Below are positions 40,067 to 63,456 of a DNA stretch of 64,000 nucleotides, piece after piece. The DNA comes from Rhodosorus marinus CCMP1338 (taxonomy: Eukaryota; Plantae; Rhodophyta), in NCBI GenBank assembly GCA_029953675.1, contig JAMWBK010000011.1:620001-684000 (forward strand), read 5' to 3'. Below the pieces are notes generated by a model that saw only the letters and a list, made by a program, of their open reading frames with translations, was not told the origin of the DNA and did not search any database. Numbering within the stretch: the first letter of the stretch is position 1; each line of letters opens with the position of its first letter. A program made the translations under genes and the position numbers.

Positions 40067-41072
40067 ATGGTCTGTGAGGAGCTGGTAGTTTGGATCTGGA
40101 GCGGAGAATGGTTTCGACCGTTGAGCGCGAAGGGGACTTTTGTCCTGTCGTTTGGAGCTGTGTTTCTATGCATGATCGTTTCCTCGATTCTCGTCTTTCA
40201 ACACTCAGCGGGAGCGATCATCTGCTTCGTGGTTCTGTCGCTTTTGACCCTAAGTTCCATGGTTCGGTGCGCGGTTATTGATCCAGGCTATGTGACCGAG
40301 TCCTCTACCGGTGCAAGCGATGTTCCGCCGGATCGACTGTGCTTGCGGTGCGAGGGGTACAAACCTCCACGTGCTCACCATTGTAGAGTGTGCAAGCGAT
40401 GTGTGCAAGTTATGGACCATCATTGTACTTTTCTAGCTAACTGCATCGGACGGGGCAACAGGAAACTGTTCCTACTGAGCCTGTATTATGGCTTTTTGTT
40501 GTCCGTTTTGGTCGTTCTCACGGCTCCAAAGGCGCTAAGAACGTACGATCAATGCGACCATTCAAATTGCGAGATTTCGGTTCTATTCGAAAGGTTCTGA
40601 TGCTTCTAAGCGTTCTGTTTCTATTGCCAGTATGGTGTCCGCAACTACCCACTCTGAGACTCCGCCGGAAGCCCTGTACGTGCTCTACCTGATTATCTGC
40701 TTTGTGGTCTTCCAGCAGAGCGCTATATACTCCGTGGCGACCTTCTCTCTCGCAGCATTTCAAACCTTTCTGGTGAAGCGGGACGAGACCACCATTGAGT
40801 TCAGAAGACTGCACGGTAAGGCGCGGAAGCTTTTGCGCAAAGCGGATGCTCTTTTTATGGAGCGAACGCTTGAGCCACCTTTGGCTGAATCCTTCATGCG
40901 AACGTATACAACAGAGGAGAATGAGAACCAACCGCCGCTAGACCCGAACGAAGCCCTTTTGAACCCGCATGGATTCAAGGAAGTCTTCGGCAGCTGTGTC
41001 GCGCTCTGGTTCCTTCCGATCTTCCCTGACGAGTTGCGGACGGAAACATCATACGACGAGCTTCCGGCTTGA
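40067..41072 (+). CDS. DHHC-type palmitoyltransferase (zDHHC/PAT), ~322 aa
   Basis: DPG; CxxC...KPPRAHHCxxCxxCVxxMDHHC...NCIG; TTIE motif; four hydrophobic segments. The two ORFs join in frame through a putative 37-nt phase-2 intron 40594-40630 (GT...CCAG). Confidence 0.9.
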
Positions 41073-41136: not shown

Positions 41137-42542
41137 TTATCCTGGCTCCAACAGGGACCAAGGGCCTGCTCCTGAAAGGAACGGACGCAGATTTGTAACT
41201 CCGAAAACTGGACCATCGAGTGTTTTGGATAGAAAAGCACACCACTCTCCAGACATAGCACAAGAGATTTCAGCGGGACAATTCCACACGTACCCGCAAG
41301 CCTCCCCTTCGGCGCTTCCCCATTCCGTGGTGTACCGAGGTCTTTTGCTTGCTGCAGGCCTCTGTCGATTCATCCGAAAAATTCGTTGATGACCACTTCC
41401 GTCGCTACGAGAGCCGTCTTTTTCAGTCTTGTAGTGCGCTTGCTGACCCAACCAGTTCCCGGTGGGTTCCTGAATAGACGTGGCGTTGGAGATTCCTGAG
41501 TCGCTGGCCCGTTTGACAGAACTTTGATGACCAAAGCTTTTTCCGTCCACCTTACCGGAGAAAAATCGAAATAGCTAGGTTCCTGGAACGTGAACGCAAA
41601 CGGTATGTCCATGGATTCTGTGTAAATAAGTTGAAAACATCGTCGATCGTCACATTTCGTGATCTTGAATACTTCAACAAAGTTATCGTCCAAGCTAGCG
41701 ACCACGAGCTTATCTCCACCGAACAGCTGCGCTTGCCTTGCTCCCTTGGTTGTGAACTTGGGCAGGTCTTCGACAGCGGCGAGTTCACAGCGGCGCGCAA
41801 ATGGTGGGGAGCAGACGAACAGCTCCAGCTGCTTGGGTTCCGGTCCCCCTAGCGGCATTGGGCCTGAATGATGGATGAGCATCAGGAGCTCATCCGAACT
41901 GCTGAAGGTGAATGTTAGACGCTTCCTCGTGGCGTCGTTGAGATTGATCAGGGTTCTTTCCCACAACACTGCGCCGGTCACGTTCATGAGGACGACGTTG
42001 ACGTCATCGTGCAAGACTGCGACGTAGTTTTCAGAAGGCGAAAACTTTACAGCGTTGATGTTGCCTTGAAAGGATCGCTGAGAGGCTAGGTTGAACCCCG
42101 AATTGGAAAGGCTGCAGATGAAAAACTCTTGCTTTTCCCGAAAGAACAGCCAGCTTGACTTGAAGCTAGCCTCTTGATCGCCGCCCCCAAATGCGAGATA
42201 CTTCCCGGAAGTAGACAGGTCGCCAACGCATTCCCCAAACTCGTGCTTGCGCGTTGGAAATGTAGAGGATGACTGAACTAAACTCGGTACAAAGATACTG
42301 TTTACGCTTACGGAACCGGTCGGAAAGTCCCAGTTGAGTACGACCGCAGTCCTTCCGTCCTCTGAAACGAAGCAACTCACTGCCGTGGAGTTGCAAGATT
42401 TGTACAACACGATCGGTTCCAATAACGTGCGATCAAAAAAGCTTGATGGACTCCCAAACTCAAGAATTCGACCATCTAGCTGAGAACCTCGAGCTAGGTG
42501 CCTCACGAAACCATTCTCAACCTTTGTAGTCTTCACCTCCAT
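41137..42542 (-). CDS. F-box-like/beta-propeller family paralog A (degenerate F-box), ~439 aa
   Basis: Exon 1 42542-41556; intron 41555-41470 (GTAAG...TTCAG, 86 nt); exon 2 41469-41137. Motifs VSEDGRTAVVLNW, DLSTSGKYLA, KFSPSENYVAV, and C-terminal GEWC..F...GVTNLRPFL..GPW. Confidence 0.8.
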
Positions 42543-43279
42543 CGCTGAACAGACCTCACCACAAACCTCCTAGTGCTGTCCAGAACACTGCAACACGCAG
42601 CTTTTGGACGATTCCCTAGGCGGACTGAAATCGTTGACCGGCAGCCTGTAGAAGTTCAGTGTTGCGGAACGAAACTCGAGATTGTCTCCCGCTTTGGTGA
42701 ACTCATCCAGTCCATGTCGCAGCCGCATGGTCACGAGCCAGGAGCCCATGGACCGCCCGATGGGCTACCCTAAACGAACTGTTTCAGTGTTGAGCTGAGC
42801 TGGAGACGGAAGTTGATCCACAGACAATTACCGCACCTAGCTAGGAAGTGGATTCTCGTTCTATGGTTCGCATAGGTCCTCGTCAATCCTGGTGACTATC
42901 CAAGCAAACCTATGAAAGGCTTTCCTGTCGCAACCGACGAAGGCCCCATTTGTCATTCAAATATTTATGTTTTACAATATCGTGCGAACCATTCTTACAG
43001 TAGTTGCACGAAAAACTATGTTCGGATTGGTTCCTTACATAAGACTATTGACCAATTATGTTTCTGTATTCTTTCATATCAGATCGATTGGAATCGGCGC
43101 TTTTGTGCTGACGCCTGGAATCCACTGCTGTTGCTCAAGCTATGACTATATGATTGTCCTTTTGTAGCCGGTTCTTCCTTACGGTTAAGTAGCTATCCAA
43201 TATAGTCCTCTTGCGTAGGAAGGACTGGTTTCCATACCTCAAGCATACACGAGAACGGCATGAGGTTCATGAAGTATAG

Positions 43280-44685
43280 TTAGGGGCCAACATGTGGGAG
43301 GTCTAGTAGGTTTGTACACCACGCTCCGTACTGTGAGAATCCACACGATATTTCATGTTGAGCCCTCCACACGAGGGCAACTCTAGCTGGCGTAGGTTCT
43401 ACTTCTTCAACGGTTCCCGAAGTCGAAGTCCCTACGCTGGCCCTAAAACCCCTGCCGATACCGTTTTCCATAAATAGTCTCCCATGCTCATCCGGGTCAT
43501 CTTTCGCTGAGTTGTACTCGAGCTTAACCCATTGTCCAGAGGCGTCCTGTAGGTCAAGAAAGAAGCCAGAAGGGTTAGTTGCACATGGATGGATCGGCGT
43601 CCATGCATGAGCACAAGGAGCAACCGGCACTGACAAAAAGCACCCACCTCGGAAAACTTGAAGAACCTGGGAGCTACGACCTTGGATACGTGATAAAACT
43701 CCTCATTCTCGTAGGACGAACGAAAGCACAGATCGTACTCGTCCTCCAAATCCTCAATTGCGCGTATTTCGTAAGCCTCCAGGCAGGATGAGTTTCGATG
43801 GACATAGATCAACGTACTCCCATCGACAAACGCCTGCCTGCCGGCTCTAGGAAGATTCTCCGGCGGCGGAGTCATCTCCCTCGGAGCCTTGTCCATGCAA
43901 AACGGAGGTGAGCAGGTCCATAGTCGCAACAGACCAGATCTCAGAAACTCGTTCATATCTGGATAGTTTTCTACCATAAGAAGGTCGTTTGATTGAGTAA
44001 ACGACACCGAAAGTTGCAGCGGAATTCGGTCATAAACGGCATCGAACGATTTCCTCCACACCACATGTCCCAACGTGTTCAGTACGAGTAGTCTCCTATC
44101 GTCGAACTTGACCGCCATGTACTCGTCCGACGAGGAGAACTTGATGTCGTTGATCTGACCCGCAAGCTGGTGCTCCCCAACCTTCTCGGCAACGCCGCCC
44201 GAGAATCTGCAGAGGAGGAAGTCATATTGATAGCGAGTGAATATCTTTTTCCCGGCCTCTCGCTGTTGTCTTAGGTCGTTCCCACCTCCGAACGCAAGGA
44301 AGTCGCCCGACCTTGACAGCTCACCAACGCAAGTGGATTCTTTGTATTTTCGGTACGTCCTGATCGTCGTTCGTGTCCTACTCAGCCGCGGTATCCTGTA
44401 CCTGTCGATGTCAATCGCTCCATCCTCATACCGCCAGTTCACAAGTGCTGCAACCCGACCGTCTCCCGAAACGCAAGAGAACGACACGGGATCTACGTGT
44501 TTGGTCAACAAGACGACAGGCTCCTTCTGACTGACGACGGCGTAGTCGTACGTCTTATGAAGAATCTCATACATCTCCCGGGAAGAATGAGCCATCATAA
44601 CCCGATCCCTTGTGTCCAGTTGCTCCGCTATCTGGGCCAATACATGCCGAGGAAGAGGCGGTACGTCTGCACAACTTTCTTTCAT
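43280..44685 (-). CDS. F-box-like/beta-propeller family paralog B, ~434 aa
   Basis: F-box-like LPRHVLAQIAEQLDTRDRVMMAHSSREMYEIL. Exon 1 44685-43648; intron 43647-43547 (101 nt); exon 2 43546-43280, which lacks ~12 aa of the conserved C-terminal block. Confidence 0.82.
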
Positions 44686-45860
44686 AGTCGCGTCTGTATA
44701 ACGTGATTTTAAAAACGTGTTCTAAATTGCTACAGCTCCCTGGAACATACTCCACAGTCTGGCTGCCGTTCCTGAAACCGTTCGAACCTTAAAATGCTCA
44801 TCTTAGTCAGTGCATCCTAAGCGCGTGGACCCTTAACCCTCAATCCTGAACAGACAGCATCCCAGCTGGCTGTCGGTCCAGCAAACCGCGATCAGGATAC
44901 CCTGTCCGCACAAGGACACGTTCCCAACGACCAGTCGCCAACGAAATGAAGCTCACCACAACTTCTCAAGGTCTGAGCTAAAGCTCAGAAAAATCAAAAC
45001 TTCAGCCCTCTGGACAGCGGCCTGAGGTAGATTTTTCAAAGGATCCACACACGCATTGGTGGTTCCAGATGACCAGAAGAAAAGCAAGGAACATCGAAAC
45101 CTCTGAGTAGTCTTCTTCACCTGCAGCGCTTTCCCGGCATAAGCAATAAGTAAAAGGTCAAACCCTGCCGGAACAGCGCTTGAGTTGATAAGCAAGTTTG
45201 TTTCACAAAAAATGAATATTTTTGAGATGATCAATCACGTACGATTTAAGTTGACTAGAATATCTCGTATCAACCAATAGAATTGCTGAATGGATGCGTT
45301 GGCGGATCAAAAAGACTGACCTTAATGGATCTCGCCGTTGGACCTGAGAGCGGAAGCAGATGGCTGCCAACGGTGACTGGAGAGACAGAGTGGCTATGCT
45401 CTGCTCGAGGATAGATTTCGATTTCTACATAGAGTAAACTGGGAAACTGAAGTTCAGTGGAGAGGGCGGCGAAGGACGCGGCGGAGTCGTGTCGTGACGA
45501 CTTTGCATTGGGGGAGGTTCTTCTTTTTCTATCCGACGTGCATTGCAATGCCATTGCTCACCCGAATACACCGGCCGCTCGACATATGGAAGATAGAAAT
45601 GTACGACTACGTGCTTGGAGACGTTTAATTTCAGGTACATGCAACCCCAGGCTTACATACTTGGCGAAGCGCCAATCGTGGTTGCTGTTGCCCATTTTGC
45701 ATCTTTCTCTGAAGAATTAAAAACTTAGTCCGCTAAAGGCGTCTTCCACCATGAGGGCTTCAAGCGGGTTCATCATCCCAGCGGGTCATCATCTCATTGG
45801 GCTTGGATGGCAACCCTTAAAGCTAGTCACCTTTATTATCAACATGACACGCGGCATCCA

Positions 45861-47345
45861 CTAACCCATAGAACGTACATCGTCAACGCCGTTTTCCTCC
45901 TCGGATTGATCGAGTTTCGGAGAAAGTATTCCCCATGTGTTCGGATTCGAATCTTCAAGAAAGGGTAGGAGGTTTGTAACTCCAGCAACTTGAACCTCGT
46001 GATGTGGGCTGTCCAGTGCATAGACACACCACCCGGTCTCCTCCCTCACGCAGAAATCAGCAAATACCCAGGGCCCGGAGAGATTAAAACATTGTGTTTC
46101 GCATGTACGAGCTGCTCTACTCGCGCAGTGGAACCACGTCTCTGCTCTGGGATGCAATCGTGGCTTAGCTCCCCGAAGGGTCTCACAGTCCCAGCTGATC
46201 CAGTCCCTAAAGTTCGGCTAACCAGTTGGGGTCATGAACATATGAGGGGTTATTTATGATCCGAACTGACAAGGACAAGTTTTGAAGGGGTGACCTTTCT
46301 CTCACATACCAGGTCTTCATGTATGTATCGAGGATAGTACTTAATCCACCTGTTCGCGGGGACTCCCTTATGCCGAAGTATTCGCTGGTACTCAACAGAG
46401 TTGTTTGTGAGCATCAATCTGAAAACTGCAGCTTCCCTTCTTTCCATCTCGTAGAATATGAGTATTCCGCAGTCCTGCAAGCAAACCTGAGCATTCTCAC
46501 AGATCGCATGGGGAAGAGATGGCATCTCCACAACCTTCGTGAACGGAGGTGGGCTTTGATACAGCACAGGAGGATAGCCCCGAGCCCAACCTGACCTAGG
46601 CTTGTCCCACAAGAAGAGGAGGTCGTCCTCCTTCGTAAACGCCGTTTGCGCGCCATGAACGTTTGTATACCGTCCAGTTCTTTGGACGGAGATAACGTCC
46701 CCGACCGAGTTGAAAACGGTAATGTCTCCACTTTTCAGTACTCTGACCGCCACGAAAAGACCTGAGCGCGATACTTTCAAGTCTCCGATGTTCCCGTCAA
46801 GCGTCAGCCGGCGGATCAAACTCACCCCGCCGTCGTCCAGTTTGCACAGGAACAATTCAACTGGGTTCGAAGGAGATACATAAGCATCCGCGCCTCTTGA
46901 GAAGGCCAGCAGTTCACCATCGTATGAAAAATCGCTCACGATCGCTTTCACCGCTTTTTTATATGCTGTTTTAATGCGCAGAGATCTTCTCGTGCGGACT
47001 GGAACGGTTATTCTTTCAACCACAATCTGGCCGTGAGAAGCCCTTGATCCGCACGAGAGCACAGCCCGTTCCAGACACATGCCATTTGCTAGCGGTGAAC
47101 TTTTTTTTTGCCTGTAGGGGTGTATCTGCTTCAAACAGCACCACCGTGGGCTGCTTCAGCGCCTTTTCAGAAAAGGCTCGGGAAAGTGCTTCCCTCGTCC
47201 TGAGCCTCTCCTCACACTCGACAAGCTTCCTTTCGCCGCTCACGATGCAGAAAACCCGCCTGCAGCATAGAGAAAATTCCAGCCGATCCTTTCTCGTCAA
47301 CTGGTTCGCAATTTCATGGATTACATCAATTGTCAACTCCTCCAT
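45861..47345 (-). pseudogene. F-box-like/beta-propeller paralog C with a single frameshift (pseudogene or assembly error)
   Basis: ATG 47345 (MEELTIDVIHEIANQLTRKDRLEFSLCCR). Homology switches frame at ~47030-47050 (VSGTGCALVRIK to HGQIVVERI). Intron 46309-46218 (GTATGT...GTTAG); exon 2 46217-45861 with GWC...GVTNLLPFL. Confidence 0.75.
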
Positions 47346-49227
47346 TTTCCACTTGAAGAAGTTGCCGTGATCATGACGCCTTCCAGCAGAACTACCTTCC
47401 TTCACAGAAGAACTAGATCTGCTTTCGAACCTCGTGGCTGCGCATTTTCGCCAGATCTTCAGTAATGTGCAATCCAACGAGCCTCGGGCCTCTCAACAAG
47501 CCCCCTCCACCACTAACACCTTCAACAACCGCAATCCCTCATGTGTGCTATGCTAATTAGCCAAATCTTAGTCGCTGGTGAACAGATCAAAAACAATCTA
47601 AATATTGTCACAAAACGATAGCAAACAAACTGCGATAATTGGTTAACATAAAACATATGTTTTCTTTATTTTTAGATGATCGACCAAAACCGTTCGATCG
47701 ATCGCTTTCAATAAGAGCCATCACTACTACTGGGAGAGCTGAAAAAAGCTCGATGTATAAGGAAGAAAGCTTCTTGCACAACCATCGCAAGCAGATCAAC
47801 TGAGTAGCGACGAGTATGGAAGATCACGAGAGCGAGTACGGAAACAATGAGCTAACCATTCTCGCCACTGAACTATCTGTGAAACCCCAAACATTCAATT
47901 TTTGAGTAGTACGAAGATATGCTCTTGTTTCCACCAGTCCAAGAACATTTCACCGCTCAGGAACTAAGTTGCAACGGCTTTAGCAGGAATCTGACGAACG
48001 ACTGACTCCTCGAAAGAGACACCATGCTCAGTTGCTTAGATGACTTTGTACCAAACGTGCACAGAAGAGAGGATCCGGCTCAAACGCAAGGGGACAGATA
48101 TGCTTGGTAGCCCAACACCTGAGGGTCATAGCCGACGAGGCGACACGCTGCGGTGGTCCTACTCCTAACGGGACGTTGGGAGGTGTCTCCAGACAACACC
48201 AAGAGGATAGGCGCACGAGTATGAGTTGCTGGCATAGGAAATCCAAAGGAGCTGACAATTGAGACAGGCCTAGTTACACATCTATATAAGGATCGTCGAG
48301 GTCAGGACGGAATTCCCGACTGGAAAAGAGAGCTTCATTAGAAACTCCAGCGTTCACCTTCCAACCCGGCTACGACGAAACTATCATGATTATTACTACA
48401 AATTAGATAATGACTGCTTATTAATCCATGAAACTATCGAATTCACTATTTTACTTTATCATATTGACCACTGGAGAAGCTGTTTCAACCGGAAAACAAC
48501 GTAATGGCTCGCTTATTGGATAAATTTTGACTGATAAATTCCAATCGCTACGCTTCATATATGATTCCATCCAATGGTTGCTCTTCCTGTTAATTGTGTG
48601 AGAATTGTCTAAAGAATTTTGATGACTTTTTACTTATTTTCTTCGTTGGAAAAACTTGTTCTGTGTCTGTGCTTTGATGGAAAGCTCGATGTCCAGCTGC
48701 ACCAAAGGGTATAAAAGGGTTGGTCCGGGAGGGCTCTGGACTGCCTCGAGTGATGAACTGGAGCGCCCCGGGACACCTTCGTGGTTCCCCAGTGGCCAGT
48801 ATTGGTCCCCAGCACTTGGACCGAGTGGCGCGGCCTTGGCGTGGCTGGCATTAAGCTGGTGGTTTTGATCGTTGAGGGGATCTCACACGCTGATGGATCG
48901 CTTCTTTCTGAAGCCGTGGTTTACCAGTTTAAAGATTTCTTCGTGGCTTCATGGAATTTACGACGGCGAAGCGAGTGGGTCGTTTTTGTGAGGCAGAATG
49001 CATGCGGACAACGACATGTGTTCACGAAGCTAGACGTCTCGGTTGAGAAGTAAAACGGCGGTGCACAGCAGCCGGAAATACCTTGACCCTGGCCGCGTCT
49101 AAGAAATGCGTTTCAAAGTTTAAGGCAGCTAACAGCAACCACAACCATATGGACAGTGCTTACGCACTGCATCGCGATGGGCTTACCACCCTGGATTCGC
49201 AGCGGGTATGCAGAAAGACAGCTAACA

Positions 49228-49340
49228 GCCAACACCTAAATTTTCTTGCCAGAAAACAAAATGCTGTCTGTGCATATACCCAAACATTACGGCCAACATC
49301 TAAATTTTCTTTCCAGAAAACTAAGTGCTGTCGTGCAAGA
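49228..49340. repeat. 64-bp-period imperfect tandem duplication
   Basis: GCCAACA(C/T)CTAAATTTTCTT(G/T)CCAGAAAAC(A/T)AA(A/G)TGCTGTC at 49228 and 49292. Confidence 0.8.
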
Positions 49341-49607
49341 TACTATAAGGCTGTCTGTTCAAACTAAAGCGAATATTCTAACATACACACTCACAATGTC
49401 CCTTAAAGAGCGGTGCTCTCGGAGAGAGCGCCGTTTCCACTAATGGCTCGAAGATTTGGTTCAGCGCAGAGACGTTTCGGGCCTTGACGAGACTACAAGA
49501 GGACTACACTTCAATGGTGTTGCACCTCTGCATGTCCCTTCACGGATATGAAAAATTTCAAATCGGTATTGAAAGCTTGCGATCAACCAGTATGGAGCGC
49601 TTGTCGA

Positions 49608-49808
49608 GGTCCGCTACGTTCGTTAGATCGCGACTGTATAGTTCTCATTACCACAGTGGGTCCACTACGTTTGTTAGATCGGAGTTTGTAGTTCTCATTA
49701 CCACAGTAGGTCCACTACGTTCGTTACATCGGAACATATAGTTCTCATTGCCACTATAGGTCAACTACGTTCGTTAGATCGGAGTCTATAGTTCTCATTA
49801 CCACTGTG
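49608..49808. repeat. Minisatellite, 4 x ~50 bp
   Basis: Units at 49608, 49659, 49709 and 49759; consensus GGTCCACTACGTTCGTTAGATCGGAGTNTATAGTTCTCATTACCACAGT(A/G). Confidence 0.92.
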
Positions 49809-50845
49809 GCTTCCGAGGAAGTCAGCGAGACCAGTTTTGCTTTACAAAAGAAACTGGGCGTTGTTCTGCGGACATCTCGGCCACAACAACTTGCTTCCTC
49901 CAAAAGGATAAGCTGACCTGCTCAGCTGGTAAAGTAGAGGACCAGTCTGCTAGGGGTGAGTAGACGCTCTCATCAATCCTGCTGGTTTGCATATTTGGGT
50001 AGAGAGCACGTGGGTACAGTCGTCCTGGAAGCCAGCTCTTTCATCAGCAAAATCTAACCCTGTTTTAAATAACTGACCGTCGCTCACCAGGCATCTCGCC
50101 CAGCAAGTAGCCTACTTTCAAAGGAAGCTCTTCCTGACAGTTGAGGTGGACGATTAGGGTTGTTGATATATACAGTACCTCTGCCTCCTTGACGAAAGTA
50201 AGCGCCCGATCTCTACAATCACATTGGTAAGCATGGAGGTGGAGAGAGTACTGGGTGCACGTTCATTTATACTGCCTAGTTGCTTGTATCGCGGTCTCCT
50301 CGGGTTTTACGAAAACGAACACTTCTCAACCAGGACGGATTGCTTGCCACAAGAGTCGAGGCTCCGATGCCGGCCGCCTTGGTGCTTTTGCATCCCTTAG
50401 ATCGTCGTGTTGTGTTACGAGTTCTCATTGCTGCCACTATTGTTCACCAGATATCTCGGCCAGCTTTGCCTCCTTCAAAAGGAAACTCTCTACTTTGCTG
50501 GGTACTATTAGGGTCGTGCATTTTGCGAGGATGCTCCGTCTCCGTCTCCGTGAGGAATGTGTGCGTCCGATCTCGACACTCGTATTGGTAGCATGTTGGT
50601 CGAGAGAGAGAGATAGCACTGGGTTCGGGTGGGGCCCTTGAGGGAGTTTGGTTTCAGAGCTCTGTCCCGAGGATTTTAAAGTGTCGGCTCTGGTTAAACT
50701 GGATGTATATGATCGCAGCTAGTTGCGTTCCGGTTTGGAGGAGGCGGTTCTGGGGCTTTGGTGGTTAGCGTTGCGCTGAAAGAGGCAGCTGCCCCTTAGA
50801 AGTGCGCGGTTGCGCAGTTTGGGTTTGAAAGAGATAGGGAGGGTC

Positions 50846-52198
50846 ATGGACCTGACAGGAGCGCATGTGTCAGCCTTATCGTCCCATATGATATGGGATT
50901 CTCTGCCTCTGAACTGGCTTCTCTTCCGGCTTCAGAGGAAGAGCGTACCTGCTGGGGCTGGGGACCGCTCGGTGGTGCTGGCTGACCTGGGGATAGATAT
51001 GCCCCCGCAGACTAAGGCAGCGATGTCCATGTCAGTGTTTGGGAAGCTGTTCGCCATATTCACGAGCCCCGGGCTGCTGATGACGGAGGTACTAGAGGAG
51101 AAGTACAGTTTGGGTTCTGCATGGGCGTTCCTTGGAGGGCTGCCCGTCCTCGAGGGGATGTCCACGAATACGTGTTTCAAGGGTTTCAAGAGGATGCGAT
51201 TCTTGATGTATTCAGAAGATACATATGGGCACATGCTCATGACGAATGAGCTCGACGATGGGCGAATTGCGTTCCTAAAGATTACCGAATTGGATGAGAG
51301 GAGCTTAGTTTCCCAGTTCGGAACGATTGATCAGGAAAAGCAAACGATTTCTATGTGTATACCTATAAGTGCGTGGAGGAGTTGCCGCGAGTGCGTGCAG
51401 ATGAGCCGACCCTGTGATCTCAAGACATGTTTTGAGGATGCTGGTAACTTCGAGGTTCGAAGAGGTCTTAGGAAAGGACTTGTTGTCGACTGGGACCAAA
51501 TGGGCCTTTCCCTTCGGTATTTTGAGATGTGGATGGGCGACACATGGACGCACCCAGCGGGACCCTTGAATCCCTATTCGGTGACGATGACGTTCTCCGT
51601 TGACGGCTCTCTGATTGAAAACGCGCAGCTTTCCGTGTTGCAAGACTCCTTGGTGGAGATCCACCCCGCACGCTCCTCCTACCGCATGGTGAACGTATGG
51701 AAGAAGCAGATGGACAGCCAGCTGAGTCTGGATGAGCATGTATGGAAGAAGCAGATGGGCAGCCAGCTGAGTCTGGATGAGCATCGTGACGAATCCTCGT
51801 CCGAAGTCGTTGTGGATCTCAAGCTGAGCGGTCTAGTTTGCGAGCTGTGCAACACGAGGTTCGCTACAAACTATAATCTAAAGAGGCACAAACGGACTGT
51901 CCATGAGAGGAAGAAGGGCTTTGCGTGCACCCTGTGTAAGAAGACGTATTCTCAGAACGGGCATCTGAAAGAGCACGTGAGACTGATACACACTGGAGAG
52001 AACCTGTTCGCTTGCACCGTGTGCAGCAAGCACTTTGGCTCAAAGTCAAAACTTGACAGGCACGCGGTGACCGTCCATGGAAGCGAACGTAGCTTCCAAT
52101 GCTACTTGTGTTCAAAGAGGTACAAAGAAAAATCCTCGCTGAAACAGCACCAGGCAAAGCATCACAAGACATGGAGGAAAGAGAAGCTCTCGCGTTAA
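50846..52198 (+). CDS. C2H2 zinc-finger protein (4 C-terminal fingers), ~450 aa
   Basis: Four C-x2-C-x12-H-x4-H fingers (CELC, CTLC, CTVC, CYLC) with GF/LF/SF linkers. First ATG at 50846; an upstream exon cannot be excluded. Confidence 0.9.
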   Translation: MDLTGAHVSALSSHMIWDSLPLNWLLFRLQRKSVPAGAGDRSVVLADLGIDMPPQTKAAMSMSVFGKLFAIFTSPGLLMTEVLEEKYSLGSAWAFLGGLPVLEGMSTNTCFKGFKRMRFLMYSEDTYGHMLMTNELDDGRIAFLKITELDERSLVSQFGTIDQEKQTISMCIPISAWRSCRECVQMSRPCDLKTCFEDAGNFEVRRGLRKGLVVDWDQMGLSLRYFEMWMGDTWTHPAGPLNPYSVTMTFSVDGSLIENAQLSVLQDSLVEIHPARSSYRMVNVWKKQMDSQLSLDEHVWKKQMGSQLSLDEHRDESSSEVVVDLKLSGLVCELCNTRFATNYNLKRHKRTVHERKKGFACTLCKKTYSQNGHLKEHVRLIHTGENLFACTVCSKHFGSKSKLDRHAVTVHGSERSFQCYLCSKRYKEKSSLKQHQAKHHKTWRKEKLSR

Positions 52199-52645
52199 AA
52201 TTGGGTGCATTGCGTTGTACTATCTACCTCAAGAACCACAACGAGCAGAAGCCGCCCGGCCACCAATCCGTTGCGAAACTGTAGTATTCTTGACAACTAA
52301 TAAAACAATGTATTTATTTGCTTGAGGGAACCTGTCCACAAGACGAGCAGCTCGTTGATACACAAGTTCCCCTGTACTTTTCTGCTACCGGTCAGAGAAG
52401 AAGAATAGAGTTGATATCGATGGATTCTTGTTCCTTCGGTACTGAGAACGCAGAGCAGTTTCGCCTCCAGCCAAATGGCGTTGATCGTAGGTTAGCACAG
52501 TTCACCTCGCATGCAACGAAAACGTTGACCCTCTCAAGTCGCCTCGGTGATTCCTCGGCTAGTGCGTTTTGCTCCTGATGTTGCTCATGGCGTCCTCACC
52601 CTTCCAACCTCTCGCGCTTAAGAACTTGCGAACTATACCTGGGAG

Positions 52646-54002
52646 TCACGCCTCCAGACAAGATTGCAAGCAGAAAGCTTTGACGACCGGCTCGCGGTTT
52701 CCGCTGTTCCCATGTAGCTCTTCTGGACGACGCTGAAACAGACACCAACCCGAGTCCTCTCGAATGTAAAGGAATTGAGCTCGGTCAATAGCCCACGGAA
52801 GAGAGGACTCGGAATCAGTCTGGCTGTGCCTCATCAACGGCGTTCGGTTGGGGCCCGCTGATATATAAATTTTATGTGTTGTTCGATTCGGCGGCTTGTT
52901 GGGGACGTCGACTAGCTCCATAGAACAAATCCATCCCATGGACTTGTCGCCCTTCAAGTATCGTGCCAAGAAGAATCCGATAAGAAAGAAGGACGCATAT
53001 GTTATTGAGGTACAATGCCTGGACCGTTCTCACCACTTCGTAAGAGATAAAGAGGTTCGGCATAAATGGGGTGATCCGGATGTTTGAGTCAATGCATGAT
53101 CGCAAACAAGATCTATATCCGCTGCTACCCGCATTGACGTCAAACACCTCGTACAGCTGGCGTTGCTCGTAGTAAACGATCAACATACCGTTGCTTGATA
53201 ACCGCGCCCGACACGTCCCTTGCTCTGTCCCTGGGATGCTAGGTAGCCGTACCAAAGTATCAAACGGAGGTGAGCTCATCCGCATCTGGTAAGAAGAGGA
53301 TTCGCGTCCAGCCGTCCGGCTGCCGTCGTTCGAAAACACGAGCAGTTCTTCCCTTTTCGTGAATGCTACACGCAGATTAATCCATGACGAGTCTCTCTTC
53401 GTGAATAGAGTTTCACCCCCTGAACTTAGGATCAACGCCTTGGTTTTAGCTGCGACCGCGATGTACTTCTCAGACCTGGAGAAAACGATCTCCGCAGTCG
53501 CCTCGTTAAGCATATGGCTGGCGATGACATGGATCTTTGAACTCGTTACTCTGCAAATGTGAAGATCGAACAAATCGCGTTGTTCGTTATAGTAATCCAT
53601 AGCCACTATGGCCAAGATCGTTCCGCTGTAGGACAACTCCGCCGAAAAGTGGCCTCCGTATCCTCCACTCTGAATCAGCAAGCTGCTGGAGACCTTGTTT
53701 TCGGGGATTCCTATCCTATCCACAACAATCTCCCGCTTTTTAAAGTTCCAGTCCACCACAACAACAACTTCTCCATTTCCAGAGATCATCCACTTGACGA
53801 AGTTCTCCCTCCCCGGACCCCTTCCCCACCTCTTGTGTAGAATCCTGATCGCCTCCGGCTGTTCCCTCGCAAGCACCTTGAACTCAAGTTTCCTCCTCAC
53901 TCCCTCGAAGCTCGACTTCGAACACAGCGCAAGGCTCAAACGATCTTTTCCAGGTAAGTACCTCGCGATGTTGTCAACGCTATCCCTCGACAGATTCTCC
54001 AT
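52646..54002 (-). CDS. F-box-like/beta-propeller family paralog D, ~424 aa
   Basis: MENLSRDSVDNIARYLPGKDRLSLALCSK. Exon 1 54002-53034; donor GTGAGA at 53033; probable AAG acceptor at 52952 (82 nt, weaker); exon 2 begins GDKSMGW and contains SGWCLF...LEA*. Confidence 0.75.
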
Positions 54003-54776
54003 ATCTTCCAGCCGTTCCCTCAGTTCCTAGGGTGTTTGCTTTTTCCATTCATACACCGTGGTCGACATCTGTTCTAAGCCACGCTGGAGAATACTTCGAA
54101 TCTGACCACAACAAGCTTCTAACTGCATTGACTACTTTCCGTCAAGTCCTGCCATATCTAATGATATCTAATGACCCCTTAGGGAAGCCAACCTCTCACC
54201 TCCTTGAGCTCATCCCCGCTACCAACCTGGGGGCTGTCCCAGCTGTCCCCGCCTTTTCGCCAGTTCTCGATTTATCTGTCCCTTGATGAACCACAACAGC
54301 TCACGTCCGATTATCGCTTTCCTCATTACACCCAAATCAATGGTGGGTTTGCTAACATTCCAAATCATTAGTCCAGCGATCTTCGCAAACCGGCCTCAGC
54401 TCGGGCACAGCGTAAGCTCCTGGTGCCAGTCTGCGTCCCAACTCGAACCCGGCCTAGGAGTTTAGCGCTCCGCAGATTCATCTGCACACTCGAGGAGCTT
54501 CAGTGAGAATCGTCAAGACACCTATCTACAACGGTCACGCATCTTCTCGCCTAGTCGTCCCCTAGTCATATTGCGCTTCGGCGAGCGTCATGCACGTAGT
54601 CCGAGCTGAACTTAAAACCAGAAGACACAGCGTCGACAATGGGGCAGAATCTCCAGTCTCCCACTCTCTCTACGGCGTCACTCATTCAAGCTATGCGTCT
54701 CTTAGACCAACTGGTCTTTCCAAAGGCCAAGGTTGACCGAAACAGAAATCCCGTTCCTTTGAGCAAAACAAAAACC

Positions 54777-56229
54777 TCAGAGAGGTGCCATAGTATGCCA
54801 TGGCTGCATTCCTTCGAGGAAGACCCTCAGGTTGACAACACTGAGCACGAATCCGCTCCGTCTGAGGCGGTCGTTGACGAAGACGCACCATTCGCCGTAC
54901 CTCGAAAACCCGACTGACTTCTCCTTGACGGCGACCCACAGGTCGAAGGGATGTTGGCGCTCCTCAGGATGCTCACCTTGGATAAGGTTGTACACGACAT
55001 GCCTTCCGGCGTTGTCCTCGGCGGTCACCGGAAGGTCCCACCTCACCCACCAGGCTCCGGTGATCGTCGGATGGTAGCTCCAGAATACAAATTTCTTCGA
55101 TCTCCTCTGGACGGAGCGATGCGGCGACTGGGAGACAAGTTCTTGGTCCGACTGAATTGAAACGACAAAGAAAACGATACTGGTTTTTAGGGTGCCATAT
55201 TCTGTTTGGCTGGAAACAATCCGACAGACTTACTTGGATGTATTCGATGAACTTTGGAGGCGCCCTCAGCGTCCCAGCAATCTTGTCAATGGACGCCTTG
55301 AAGCTGGTCGTGTACTGGTAGTTTTCCTCAGCAGTTCCAATGCTGACGACTTCAACAAAGCTAAGCTGGGGGCAGTAGTAAACCACTTTTCTATCCTCCT
55401 GGAGCACAGCGTTTCCTCGGACGCCTATGTGCTTCGGTAGGCACGGCAGCCTCTCCAAGCTCGTCCCTTCTTGGAATGGAGGTCTGCCTAGTGATACTTC
55501 CAGAGACCCTCGTCGGTTCCATATTGTTCGGCGAGATCTGGTGAGAATCAGGAGCTCGTCCACATCCGTGAAGGCAACAGAGAGCAGGCCCTCAAGCCTC
55601 ATCGTCCACAGAATTCGCCCAGAGGAATCCACGACCATCACGATAGAATCTTCTAGGATCACGGCCACGAACAGTTCGGAACGAGATATCCGGATAGCGA
55701 CGACGCTGCTATTGAGCACATAACTTTCAACCAGTTGGATAGAGTCCAATGACATGAGGCAAAGGTAAAGGTCGTTCTTATCGCCTTTTCCTTCCTGTGC
55801 CTCGCTGCCGCCTGAGATGACGAGCACATTGCCAGTGTAGGACAGTTCACATTTGATCGAGCTCCGTGTATAAGAGCTCACAGCCTGAATTGTCGATGTG
55901 CGGACTCTTCCAGAGGGTACCTCAATCCGCTTTATCTCGATTCGGTTCTGGTTGTCGAACCATTTCACAACCGCCACCACGTGACCGTCTCCCGAGACAA
56001 AGTGTGTATCCTCCTTGTAGTAGTTTCCTTCCTCATCCGTGCAAAGGCACCAAGGGTGATCGGACTCGACAGAGAAAAGTGCCGGAACCTGTTTCGCGAT
56101 AAGGAAAAAGTCGAGCATATCCTCCAGTCTTTCGAACAATACCTTCGAGCTCATAGCTACCGCGAGCCGATCTTTTGGGCGAAGATGTAGGAAAATTTCG
56201 TTCCACACACGAACGCCAAGTGCCTCCAT
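54777..56229 (-). CDS. F-box-like/beta-propeller family paralog E, ~456 aa
   Basis: MEALGVRVWNEIFLHLRPKDRLAVAMSSK. Exon 1 56229-55234; intron 55233-55152 (GTAAGT...TTCAG, 82 nt); exon 2 55151-54777 is open into GEWCVF...VVNLRVFLEGMQPW. Confidence 0.82.
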
Positions 56230-56329
56230 GGCTGTTCCCTGCCGCTGTCGATGTGGCACCTATCCACGAACGTTACTAGAGCATAAACCCAATATCCGTA
56301 CTTGATCCATGGAGTCATTCACATCCCAC

Positions 56330-56960
56330 TAGCCCCACCCCCTCCATCGACTGTTCAAGAACGATAACAAACTGATCGGAATTCGCGTCTACAGATTGGA
56401 GAACTATGTAACGAATCCAGCACCTCCGCTGCTGTAGCGCCGGGGCAGACCTGGTTCGAAGATCTTCGTTACTATGCCGGCAATAGCTTATCATCCTTTG
56501 AGACCTAACCTCGAAGTCAGTTCCGTCAAACTACAGTGAGCGAAATTTCAATGAGCTGATCTCTGGATCAGAAGATTATCGCAAAGCGCTACACGACCAT
56601 CGGAACGGGCTCATGTCCAGTCGCGATTGATACACTACTTCCCTGTGGTCCTTCCAGCTAAACAATCTGAAACGCGCTCAGCGACGAGGAAAGCATATTT
56701 GCCAGCACCAGCTGCAACCCTAACCTCCACGACGGTCAATGTCACGCTACAGATATCCTGTCGTGCTGTCCTAGCCAATATCCACGTCAAAGGTCTTTCA
56801 CCATCCCCACTCTTTGACGATGTCCAAACGACAATCAGCTACAACAGAACATTTGAGTACTGATTTTCCAGTGTCTTATGTTTTATTTTGACTATATCCT
56901 GAAGATCGGAGCGGTTCAACAGCGACCAGAGCCTCGAGAAGCCGCGTCCGGTTCGTCTAT
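56330..56960 (-). pseudogene. Probable decayed F-box/propeller family copy
   Basis: Stop-interrupted minus-strand fragments SGDGERPLTW (~56810-56780), VSKDDKLL and LHSSPICRREF resemble the family motifs SGDG...W, FSxxDxLL and CSPPF, in the correct order; boundaries approximate. Confidence 0.4.
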
Positions 56961-57768
56961 TCAGCCGCCATTGGTTCCAACGGATTCGCGAAAAAGAAAG
57001 CACTCTGATTTGTTGAGAAGAGATACGTTTTGGCTGACACCTCCAAAAAAAGAAAATCTGAAGATTTTTAAACGGAATGGAAACGGCAGAAGTCAATGAG
57101 TTCATTCGCTACTGGAAAGGTTGAAGCTACGGCTGGAGCTTGGGGAGAGGCTTACATGATTTGATCTCTTGATATGTTTGGACGTTTAAGAACTTTTCGG
57201 TAGCACATTTCGCGTTCTTGTTGAGTTTTATATATAGATGATCCTCTGACATTGGCGTTGAACGACGTTTTCGTTTTCTATTTTGCTTGGATTTGCTCAG
57301 AAGTCACAGCTTACGTTCTTTCTGTGGAAGGCGTGCCTGAAGTGCATCAGATAATTTAGTACAACACGATCAAAGATGATACTCAACCCGTCTCGGCTTC
57401 GCAATTGGCTCTATTCTTCGTCCTCCTGTGAACGGATGTCGGGTGTGGCCAGATGCAGTGGGCAAAGCACTGAAACGCAATTTTGGTACGCAGGGGTGAG
57501 TGCTCGGATGAAACAAAGAAGGTGGGACCGTCCTGGAATTGAGTCCGACAGGATAAGCTCCATGGCACTCGGCGATACTTTATAGCTTCTCGTGTTGCCT
57601 CTTCTGAAAAAAGCTACCGAACCGTGGTCATGAGCGACATCTTTTCGCTTGCAGAGAGTTCCCGGCTATCTCTTCCACGTTAACTAAAGACCACAGTATC
57701 TTTACAACAGTGGAATATTCATCCATTCCATCAAACACTATACGCATGAGTAATTTACAGCATTCTGT

Positions 57769-59256
57769 TCATGTCATCTGTGCGGTACTTGGCTCCTCCA
57801 TTACGCCAAGACCAGAAACGAGCAAATTCCAGGGTCCACCCGCTTCTAAGAACGGTTTTAAATTGGTTACCCCCACAATCTGAACACCTTTTGACAACCG
57901 GTACGCGAAAATACACCACCCTCCATCCCCCCTAAAGTAGCAGCTCTCCTCGAACTTTCCTCTTCCAACTGTAATCCACGGATTCGCTCTGTCCATCTTC
58001 CCATCCAGCCCATTGTAGAGACCGTTCTCACCAAAGCACCTCTGCATTAGTCCAACAGATCGATCTTCACATGTGAACTTCCCAGCTACCCAACTCCTCA
58101 TCTGATTACCCTGCACATGTTACCATACAAAAAATGACGGAGCCTGAAGATTGAGTCTAGTCTCTATGGACAAGGCCTGTATGCTAAAGCTGTGCAACAG
58201 CTTTTCTACCTCGAGTCCTGCTAGAGAAAACGTTCGCGCCTTTGCCGTTCTCAAACTCACCTGCATGTACGAGATATAAGCCAGCGGTTCCGGTGAAAAC
58301 CATCTCTTCCTGTCGCCGAGTTTCGTTCGAAAGACTAGTTTGTATTCCGCGCTTTGAACATCTATCTGAAACACCTCAATCTCTCCAGTATTGCCGTCAT
58401 AATACATCAGCTTGTTTTGGTTGCTCAGCGATGCCTGCCATCTATCACCGGTTCGTTCCGGCAAACGCGCCAGCTGAACTTCCTCGAGGAGCGGTGCAGA
58501 ACAGGTCCAAAGTTCAACCTTATTCGGCCCCACTCGAGCTCCCATCTCCCCTGCACTTAGGAACAGGAGATCGCCGGACTTGCTGAACGCAACCGAACAT
58601 CCACGGTCACCCTCGTTCACAGCCACGTTCTTACTCCATACCTCCTCCCCCGAACGAGAAAGCAGCTTCATTGCCCCGTTCCGCGTGGCAACAACGACGT
58701 ACTCCTCCGATGGGGATATTTTGATATCCGTCACGTCACACGTGTACTCGTGAAACGCGATTTCCTGCATCTCCGAACCGTCCATACTGACCAGGTAGAC
58801 CTCGTACGTTTCGCCGCCTGGAGGAGGGCGGCTGTTCAAGCTGCCGAAACCAAAGGCAAGGAGGGATCCGCTGTAGGACAGATCACTTTTGAAAATGCCG
58901 GCCCTACCGGTTCGGCCTCCATCGATTTCTAGCCGTCGCCGAGTTGATCTTCTGCTGATTGATGCAAACCGTTCTATCACAATGTTCCCCCGCTCAAAGT
59001 TCCAGTCGACGACAGCCGTCACCTTCCCATCCCCGGAAACCAGCCACCTCAGGCCACGCTTCAAAGAAGGCGTGCGCCCAGGCCGCTCGTCCTTGAAAGT
59101 CATCACCTGCGGAAACTCGACCGCTGCCTGAAAGAATTCCATCTTGCCCTCCAGCATCTCCGAGCACGACTTTGAACATAGAGCCAAGTTCAACCGGTCC
59201 AAGAGAGGCAGAAAATCTACCACCCTCCTCATCGTCATGTCACCTAAGCCCTCCAT
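57769..59256 (-). CDS. F-box-like/beta-propeller family paralog F, ~445 aa
   Basis: MEGLGDMTMRRVVDFLPLLDRLNLALCSK. Exon 1 59256-58261; intron 58260-58111 (GTGAGT...TGCAG, 150 nt); exon 2 58110-57769 with GGWCIF...GVTNLKPFLEAGGPW. Confidence 0.82.
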
Positions 59257-62334: not shown

Positions 62335-63456
62335 TCAGTTGTCCAACCGTAGGAAGTTGATGATCGACTCGCAGTGCGCGTCGACCCAAATATCAACGCC
62401 GCCGAGTCTGCATCCCCACTTCTCGATCATGATCCGGGAGCACACAGCCACGCCGGCCTCCGTGAAGTCCTTGACGAAGTGGCTCAGGTTTCCCCACCAG
62501 CGGCTGGACGGGTCCATAACGTCGAAGAACGCTGGCAATGGAGTTGACGACGACACCGCCAGCCCTTCTGCGGAAGCGGCGAGGAGGTCTTCCAAGTAGG
62601 CTTTAGCGGCCAAGACGTCCTGGTAAGTACCTACGTGAGTGAAGTGACCGCCGATGTACACCTCAATGTCCAGTGCTAGGATCCTCGAGTGAAGCTCGAT
62701 GTACTCATGAATGTCCGTTACAATCGCCAAGTTGTACGGAGGAGCCCACCTCGGGAAGATGACGTCAACAAGGTAGGCGACTCCGACGCCTCCGGACGTT
62801 TTGGGGATGTGGATGATCAGATCCGACGGTGTATGTCCTCCGCACTGGGGCTTGATGATCACTTTCAGGTTTCTCCTCAGCTTCAGGACCTTCTTCTTGT
62901 CGAAAAGAACGGTGGGCAACGGAAAACCGGGGCGATCGCCGTTGATAAGAGGTTTAAGGATCGCCGAGTGGGCGAGGATCTTAATCTGGGCCTTCGGGTA
63001 GGCCGTCTCCAAGTAACTGTAGATGAACGGTACGGCTCCGATGTGATCGTAGTGCTGGTGGCTGTATATTATCTTGATCCTCTTGAACTTCGTGTCTCCA
63101 GCGATCTCCTTGATGGCGTCGGTCAGCGTGGTTCCGATCGGGACGCCATTTGCATCGCGGATGAGGAAGTTGCCCTCCGGACCGTCCACAACTATCAGCT
63201 GCGAGGACGTCTTGACTATCATCATGAAGTACTGCGACTCGCCAACGGAATACACGCCCTTCCTATACTCAGTGAGGTTGTACCCCTTGGCGTCGACCGT
63301 CACAGGGGGCAGTAGATTGTCCGGCAATGGCAGGCCCTGGCACTTCTTGCCCTTGTCGATCCTCTTTAGACATTTCGCGAGCTCGTCCTCACAAACAAAG
63401 CCAGCTGCAAGTGCAGCCAAGAGCAAACTCACAATGATCACCAATGAGCGTGTCAT
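62335..63456 (-). CDS. Secreted metallo-beta-lactamase-fold hydrolase, ~373 aa
   Basis: Signal peptide MTRSLVIIVSLLLAALAAG; VVDGP, SHQHYDHIG (HxHxDH), GGHT, LVDVIFP and GGHF metal-ligand motifs; intronless. Confidence 0.9.
   Translation of the reverse strand: MTRSLVIIVSLLLAALAAGFVCEDELAKCLKRIDKGKKCQGLPLPDNLLPPVTVDAKGYNLTEYRKGVYSVGESQYFMMIVKTSSQLIVVDGPEGNFLIRDANGVPIGTTLTDAIKEIAGDTKFKRIKIIYSHQHYDHIGAVPFIYSYLETAYPKAQIKILAHSAILKPLINGDRPGFPLPTVLFDKKKVLKLRRNLKVIIKPQCGGHTPSDLIIHIPKTSGGVGVAYLVDVIFPRWAPPYNLAIVTDIHEYIELHSRILALDIEVYIGGHFTHVGTYQDVLAAKAYLEDLLAASAEGLAVSSSTPLPAFFDVMDPSSRWWGNLSHFVKDFTEAGVAVCSRIMIEKWGCRLGGVDIWVDAHCESIINFLRLDN

Follow-up and report, generated by a model that had tools for sequence, protein, structure and literature searches.

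What kind of proteins are encoded by the array of strongly diverged minus-strand genes at positions 41137-59256 of a 64-kb window from the genome of Rhodosorus marinus CCMP1338, a unicellular stylonematophycean red alga? The window belongs to contig JAMWBK010000011.1 of the long-read nuclear genome assembly GCA_029953675.1 (window coordinate plus 620000 gives the contig coordinate), and the paper describing this genome leaves F-box genes unmentioned (Nat Commun 2023; PMC10250338). Among the titles and abstracts listed by a literature search on red algae, none described the gene family of this array. The answer offered here is that the six genes of the array probably encode clade-restricted substrate receptors of SKP1-CUL1-F-box (SCF) ubiquitin ligases, in which an F-box would be followed by a WD40-like propeller of seven predicted blades, and that the family has passed through slow birth-and-death under purifying selection, with docking on SKP1, the ligase role and the substrates themselves being putative. 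Red algae have small gene inventories, and their ubiquitin-ligase substrate receptors are little known.

Six paralogs with one shared intron

The open reading frame (ORF) listing and alignment identified six minus-strand paralogs, p1 to p6, of 424-456 aa that share only 23-30% pairwise identity, in agreement with the low mutual similarity described by a first-pass annotation made from the DNA sequence alone. Searches of exon 1 between paralogs with tblastn returned E-values of 1e-7 to 1e-36 at 23-31% identity, a relationship far beyond chance. The same annotation had counted six to seven copies; the array of paralogs stands, and its size is six, as a family hidden Markov model (HMM) run against all open stretches in six frames of the whole window matched exactly six loci. 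A seventh copy was rejected after both tblastn (E<=1) and the six-frame HMM scan came back empty in the 47.6-50.8 kb interval and elsewhere in the window. The six gene models, together with two segments of p6 discussed below, are as follows.

p1, 41137..42542, minus strand: exon 1 42542-41556, intron 41555-41470 (86 nt), exon 2 41469-41137; 439 aa
p2, 43193..44685, minus strand: exon 1 44685-43648, intron 43647-43547 (101 nt), exon 2 from 43546
p3, 45861..47345, minus strand: ATG 47345, donor 46309, intron 46309-46218 (92 nt), exon 2 46217-45861
p4, 52646..54002, minus strand: exon 1 54002-53034, intron 53033-52952 (82 nt), exon 2 52951-52646; 424 aa
p5, 54777..56229, minus strand: exon 1 56229-55234, intron 55233-55152 (82 nt), exon 2 55151-54777; 456 aa
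p6, 57769..59256, minus strand: exon 1 59256-58261, intron 58260-58111 (150 nt), exon 2 58110-57769; 445 aa
p6 F-box-like helices, 59122..59247, minus strand: residues about 4-45, with the Pfam F-box at residues 9-34 (E 0.008)
p6 C-terminal signature, 57829..57945, minus strand: residues 388-426, SCYFRGDGGWCIFAYRLSKGVQIVGVTNLKPFLEAGGPW

The derived spliced p6 (445 aa) matches the NCBI model NDN08_007193 (P0001) at 100% identity, and the derived p5 is identical to its NCBI model (456 aa). The public models of p1 (390 aa, P0005) and p4 (376 aa, P0004) are unspliced ORFs from which the C-terminal exon is missing. The public annotation can thus be corrected for the C-terminal exons of p1 and p4, and additionally for a hidden frameshift in p3 and a nonsense truncation in p2, both described below.

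All six copies carry one GT-AG intron at the same codon in phase 0 (lengths as listed), with the intron end taken as the first in-frame AG downstream of the donor. The GT donor directly follows a conserved block, ...(Y/F)(I/F).(Y/F).., and the V that looks invariant when the ORFs are left unspliced is the donor GTx. The single phase-0 intron at a common site, as first proposed, is therefore present in six of six copies and is backed by transcripts for p6 and p2. Intron-free JGI/MMETSP contigs from other R. marinus strains contain the orthologs of p6 (L002, L003) and p2 (L004) at approximately 82-85% amino acid identity, and their alignment to the window opens gaps exactly at the predicted introns, the p2 junction matching that of L004. 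p5 is represented both by a spliced protein of 457 aa and by a contig that retains the intron (GT...AG, 83 nt). In those members for which both forms are available, the unspliced and spliced proteins part at the same codon, indicating that the intron position is conserved family-wide.

Both spliced and intron-retaining transcripts have been assembled for four members (P0153/P0154, P0156/P0007, P0159/P0012 and P0160/P0060); for p1, the retaining form alone was seen (L006). With the intron retained, the protein stops short of the last blades and of the C-terminal motif. It is a speculative idea, with little probability attached to it, that this intron at the boundary of blades 5 and 6, the position of which is kept even outside the array, may act as a switch, the spliced mRNA giving a closed-propeller receptor and the retained mRNA giving an F-box protein lacking the last blades and closing motif, which would soak up SKP1 or be degraded and so tune receptor levels. 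Two of the other-strain 'transcriptome' contigs, L005 and L006, span intergenic DNA and retained introns collinear with the genome. L005 (JGI 3300017118, 4412 nt) extends from the spacer between p6 and p5 across p5 into a remnant of p4, lacking about 570 bp that correspond to the N-terminal half of p4, and L006 (JGI 3300016967, 2052 nt) holds a DHHC gene and the convergent p1. Such contigs may derive from read-through transcription, from overlapping 3' ends or from carried-over genomic DNA.

Probable N-terminal F-box and predicted propeller

The F-box-like helices proposed for the N-terminus probably form a weak but real F-box. Of 15 family members, 11 matched the Pfam F-box (PF00646 / PF12937) at E<0.1 (best E 6.3e-5). 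The highest score in the array is that of p4, whose 22 bits exceed the gathering score of 20.5; p1 and p3 gave no match. The canonical LP(E/D)(D/E)(I/V)L start is kept in more distant members, and UniRef labels the family 'F-box domain-containing protein'. When a profile of the first 52 residues was compared with all PDB sequences, only two matches were returned, KDM2A and TIR1, both of which are F-box proteins. In TIR1 it is the F-box that is matched (residues 9-40, E 0.2), and the best KDM2A match (E 0.05, residues 248-272) may lie outside the KDM2A F-box. The AlphaFold model of full-length p6 begins with helices at residues 6-14, 18-25 and 29-47, and the N-terminus modelled by itself gives a small bundle of helices at 6-15, 18-27, 29-36 and 39-47 (predicted local distance difference test, pLDDT, 79). 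Few parts of the family are as well conserved as the block L..I...L...DRL.LALCSK: the N-terminal alignment has D20 in every sequence, and L16, D20 and S28 are nearly invariant family-wide. From sequence and predicted fold together, the N-terminus is read here as a genuine, diverged F-box with putative SKP1 binding.

For the remainder of the protein, the propeller reading of the first-pass annotation was upheld at the level of the predicted fold. The p6 model (mean pLDDT 69; predicted template modelling score, pTM, 0.77) places 29 beta-strands after the helices, and a Foldseek search of PDB with this model returned 1382 matches at E<=0.001. The top 50 are all WD40 propellers, mostly seven-bladed, at probability 1.0 (including WDR5, RACK1, G-beta, EED, WDR61, DCAF1 and Lis1), with target-normalised TM values of 0.45-0.63 for single-domain matches. 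The modelled fold is accordingly of the WD40-like closed propeller class, with a probable blade count of seven. At the level of sequence profiles, WD40/PQQ repeat proteins were matched through blades 2-3 only, and the whole-protein profile compared with PDB sequences recovered only repetitive WD40 designs through summed weak one-blade matches, none of them individually significant, a result that is supportive of the predicted fold and not decisive.

The second exon carries the features that had been described as a novel conserved C-terminal signature. Its tryptophan at position 6-7 is present in five of the six copies, p5 being the exception. The signature itself, G.WC.F...GVTNL.PFL..GPW, is intact in p1, p3 and p6 and occurs as a variant in p5 (GEWCVF...SVVNLRVFLEGMQPW); in p2 it is interrupted by a TAA, and p4 keeps DSGWCLF and is degenerate after the WC.F part, with VTNL.PFL lost. 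In the p6 model, exon 2 starts at residue 333 and contains strands 335-346, 354-360, 377-380, 386-392, 397-403 and 409-415 followed by a helix at 416-421, such that the signature (residues 388-426, block pLDDT 66-83) corresponds to the last three strands and the short helix. Rather than a new module, the signature is thus predicted to form closing strands of the propeller plus a short helix, with no extra domain, and is assigned by the model to the last blade. Strand order suggests that this blade would be completed by N-terminal strands 50-56 and 67-73 joining the WC.F and VGVTNL strands, and such a closure of the last blade would explain why the signature is so well kept. The possibility that the signature is a further blade repeat was rejected for want of sequence support, since hhalign of the C-terminal and blade-3 profiles reached a probability of only 0.7% (E 0.08) over 11 columns.

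Red algae have SKP1, CUL1 and RBX1. If the proteins work as Cdc4/FBXW7 and beta-TrCP do, their F-box would dock on SKP1-CUL1-RBX1 and their propeller would present a substrate to be ubiquitinated, with different paralogs presumably recognising different substrates. Exon 2 would supply about the last one and a half blades, and the final strands and short helix of the C-terminal motif probably help to close the ring beside the F-box.

Several results weigh against this proposal. Most single F-box matches fall under the Pfam gathering score; p4 to p6 carry L-(S/G) in place of the canonical L-P and lack the canonical Trp, and the F-box of p1 is degenerate to the point of being barely recognisable. 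The top Foldseek match of the N-terminal model is an F-box bound to Skp1, that of AnkB (TMq 0.66, root mean square deviation 2.5 A), but is not significant (E 7.4, probability 0.28). The full-length model, built from 7 sequences, is only moderately confident given its mean pLDDT, and the blade count and closing role of the C-terminus are drawn from secondary-structure order and matched folds, not from coordinates. Additionally, the best Pfam WD40 (PF00400) score, 17 bits, falls short of the cut-off of 27, and WD dipeptides are absent from the repeats apart from one VW, so the proteins are best described as having a WD40-like fold and, judged by their repeat sequences, fall outside the canonical WD40-repeat family.

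The sub-threshold F-box scores in most copies, the loss of the LP-motif Pro and the Trp in array copies, and the degenerate F-box of p1, a gene that is nevertheless under purifying selection, would also be expected if the N-terminal helices were an F-box relic no longer binding SKP1, leaving the proteins as stand-alone propeller scaffolds in some other complex. This alternative is considered unlikely. A relic would have to account for an N-terminal block that is among the best conserved parts of the protein, with D20 invariant and L16 and S28 nearly so, and for a profile whose PDB sequence matches are all F-box proteins. Additionally, the ratio of nonsynonymous to synonymous substitution rates (dN/dS) was obtained by the Nei-Gojobori method for pairs of window genes and transcripts from other strains (2-3 sequences per ortholog group), and its sliding windows over the N-terminal block lie at 0.10-0.34, as low as in the rest of the protein.

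Selection, decay and distribution

The earlier proposal that the family is diversifying was not supported by dN/dS, whether taken gene-wide or in sliding windows. Gene-wide dN/dS was 0.28 for p6 against L002, 0.27 for p6 against L003, 0.35 between these two p6 orthologs, 0.27 for p5 against L005, 0.24 for p2 against L004 and 0.22 for p1 against L006, with the neighbouring DHHC gene (156 codons) against L006 serving as a control at 0.155. Values of dS ranged over 0.26-0.36 in the family, compared with 0.37 in the control, and the highest dN/dS of any 60-codon sliding window was 0.53. The family is under purifying selection, evolving perhaps 1.4-2 times faster than one control gene. Furthermore, p1, p2, p5 and p6 have 1:1 orthologs in other strains at 81-86% identity, from which it follows that the duplications predate the strain split, and neither recent duplicates nor signs of gene conversion were found in the array. 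The low identity between paralogs reflects old duplications, not fast recent divergence.

It is for these reasons improbable that the genes are rapidly diversifying, immune-like receptors in which pathogens or other fast-changing targets drive positive selection on the binding face of the propeller. Such receptors would suit the tandem layout, the 23-30% identity between paralogs, decay of a kind typical of birth-and-death families and a dN/dS elevated relative to the single neighbouring control; against them stand the gene-wide and windowed ratios, the 1:1 orthologs, which point to conserved copies without turnover, and the absence of recent duplicates and of signs of gene conversion.

The decay itself is unevenly spread. 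p1, p5 and p6 look intact in CCMP1338, as does the p1 ortholog on L006. In p2, a TAA at 43282-43280, where the ortholog has TAC (Tyr), cuts off the last 29 codons, among them those for the FMNLMPF portion of the signature. Past the TAA the reading frame remains open and conserved as far as the ancestral stop near 43195-43193, which marks the nonsense codon as a recent lesion or an error. p3 contains a 1-nt frameshift near 47030-47050, which the NCBI model NDN08_007189 (P0010, 425 aa) hides in an artificial intron, thereby removing the first blade. p3 is probably a pseudogene or the product of an assembly error; the latter is disfavoured and the shift probably real, as it lies outside any homopolymer and the frame passes through an A9 run located upstream. 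For p4, the C-terminus of which is degenerate in CCMP1338, the counterpart on L005 from another strain is a broken pseudogene with many stops, its N-terminal half absent. Overall, the array evolves by slow birth-and-death.

A mostly dead array of non-functional pseudogenes transcribed as noise is very improbable, for although the p2 nonsense codon, the p3 frameshift, the degenerate p4 with its broken ortholog and the intron-retaining or read-through contigs L005 and L006 (which could be genomic or pre-mRNA noise) would fit it, dN/dS is well below 1 in p1, p2, p5 and p6, long open frames are retained in several strains, correctly spliced transcripts exist, and the intact, conserved p2 frame past its stop marks that lesion as recent.

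A HMMER profile search of 1.84 billion representative proteins (E<=0.001) gave 266 matches, of which only about 13 represent relatives over the full length; the others belong to generic propeller proteins, matched at profile positions 150-240. Three of the full-length relatives are the window's own genes, and the ten others, looked up by cluster, all come from the R. marinus genome, from R. marinus transcriptome assemblies (mostly MMETSP) or from "Bangiopsis sp. CCMP1999", another stylonematophyte, in keeping with the lineage-specific family that had been suggested. Beyond the six array genes, at least four further lineages were distinguished (P0011/P0159, P0157, P0160 and P0085/P0079), of which P0011 (NDN08_000268) lies on another contig. 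Among the proteins searched, the family is found only in stylonematophycean red algae, and the cluster look-ups suggest about ten members per genome. If the putative SKP1 binding holds, the Stylonematophyceae would have built their own set of SCF adaptors in the form of this clade-restricted family of approximately ten members. The family is a lineage-specific member of the known F-box/WD40 class, introducing no new mechanism and settling no standing question.

Related systems and neighbouring genes

The closest parallel in architecture is provided by the FBXW receptors (yeast Cdc4 and Met30, human FBXW7 and beta-TrCP), in which an N-terminal F-box is followed by a closed WD40-type propeller of 7-8 blades, the arrangement predicted here, and the same logic is presumed, with the F-box on SKP1 and the propeller on the substrate. 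In contrast to these receptors, the R. marinus proteins have no detectable sequence orthology to them, and their propeller repeats fall under the Pfam WD40 threshold. Their F-box stands at the very N-terminus and leads almost directly into the first strand, with neither a dimerisation domain nor a long helical linker. Only the present family, which is limited to one red-algal class, carries the motif WC.F...VTNL.PFL..GPW.

In genomic organisation, the array resembles the plant FBA/FBK and nematode FBXA/FBXB families, which are likewise lineage-specific tandem F-box arrays with birth-and-death evolution and pseudogenes. Those families have hundreds of members, FBA, Kelch or FTH C-terminal domains, and site-specific positive selection, whereas the present one has about ten members per genome, a WD40-like propeller and purifying selection between strains. 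A third comparison is with generic bacterial and eukaryotic WD40/PQQ propellers such as PDB 2ymu: the pattern ..ISPSE.YVAV....L.....G..LW of blades 2-3 fits the WD40 consensus at the profile level. However, the resemblance is confined to one or two blades, no repeat match is significant on its own, and those proteins lack both the F-box and the C-terminal signature.

Several observations concern the surroundings of the array. Scans of the window for tRNA genes and Rfam families found nothing. A gene-poor gap between p3 and a C2H2 zinc-finger gene, with no long ORF and no family remnant, contains short tandem repeats, in which a 64-nt unit occurs twice and a 50-nt unit three times. The genes and repeats outside the family are listed below.

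40067-41072, plus strand: DHHC palmitoyltransferase gene, tail-to-tail with p1
49225-49332 and 49637-49807: short tandem repeats of the 64-nt and 50-nt units
50846-52198, plus strand: C2H2 zinc-finger gene, 450 aa with four fingers, inside the array on the opposite strand
62335-63456, minus strand: NCBI 373-aa gene upstream of p6, with no Pfam match and unmatched by the family HMM

The NCBI model of the DHHC gene, NDN08_007186 (P0162, 267 aa), splices out a 37-residue stretch that holds the catalytic DHHC motif, while the genomic ORF reads through it; P0164, the transcript of another strain, keeps 17 residues of this stretch, and the NCBI splice is likely an annotation error. The zinc-finger gene includes a 45-nt tandem duplication at 51695-51784, with one mismatch (98% identity), which encodes VWKKQM(D/G)SQLSLDEH twice.

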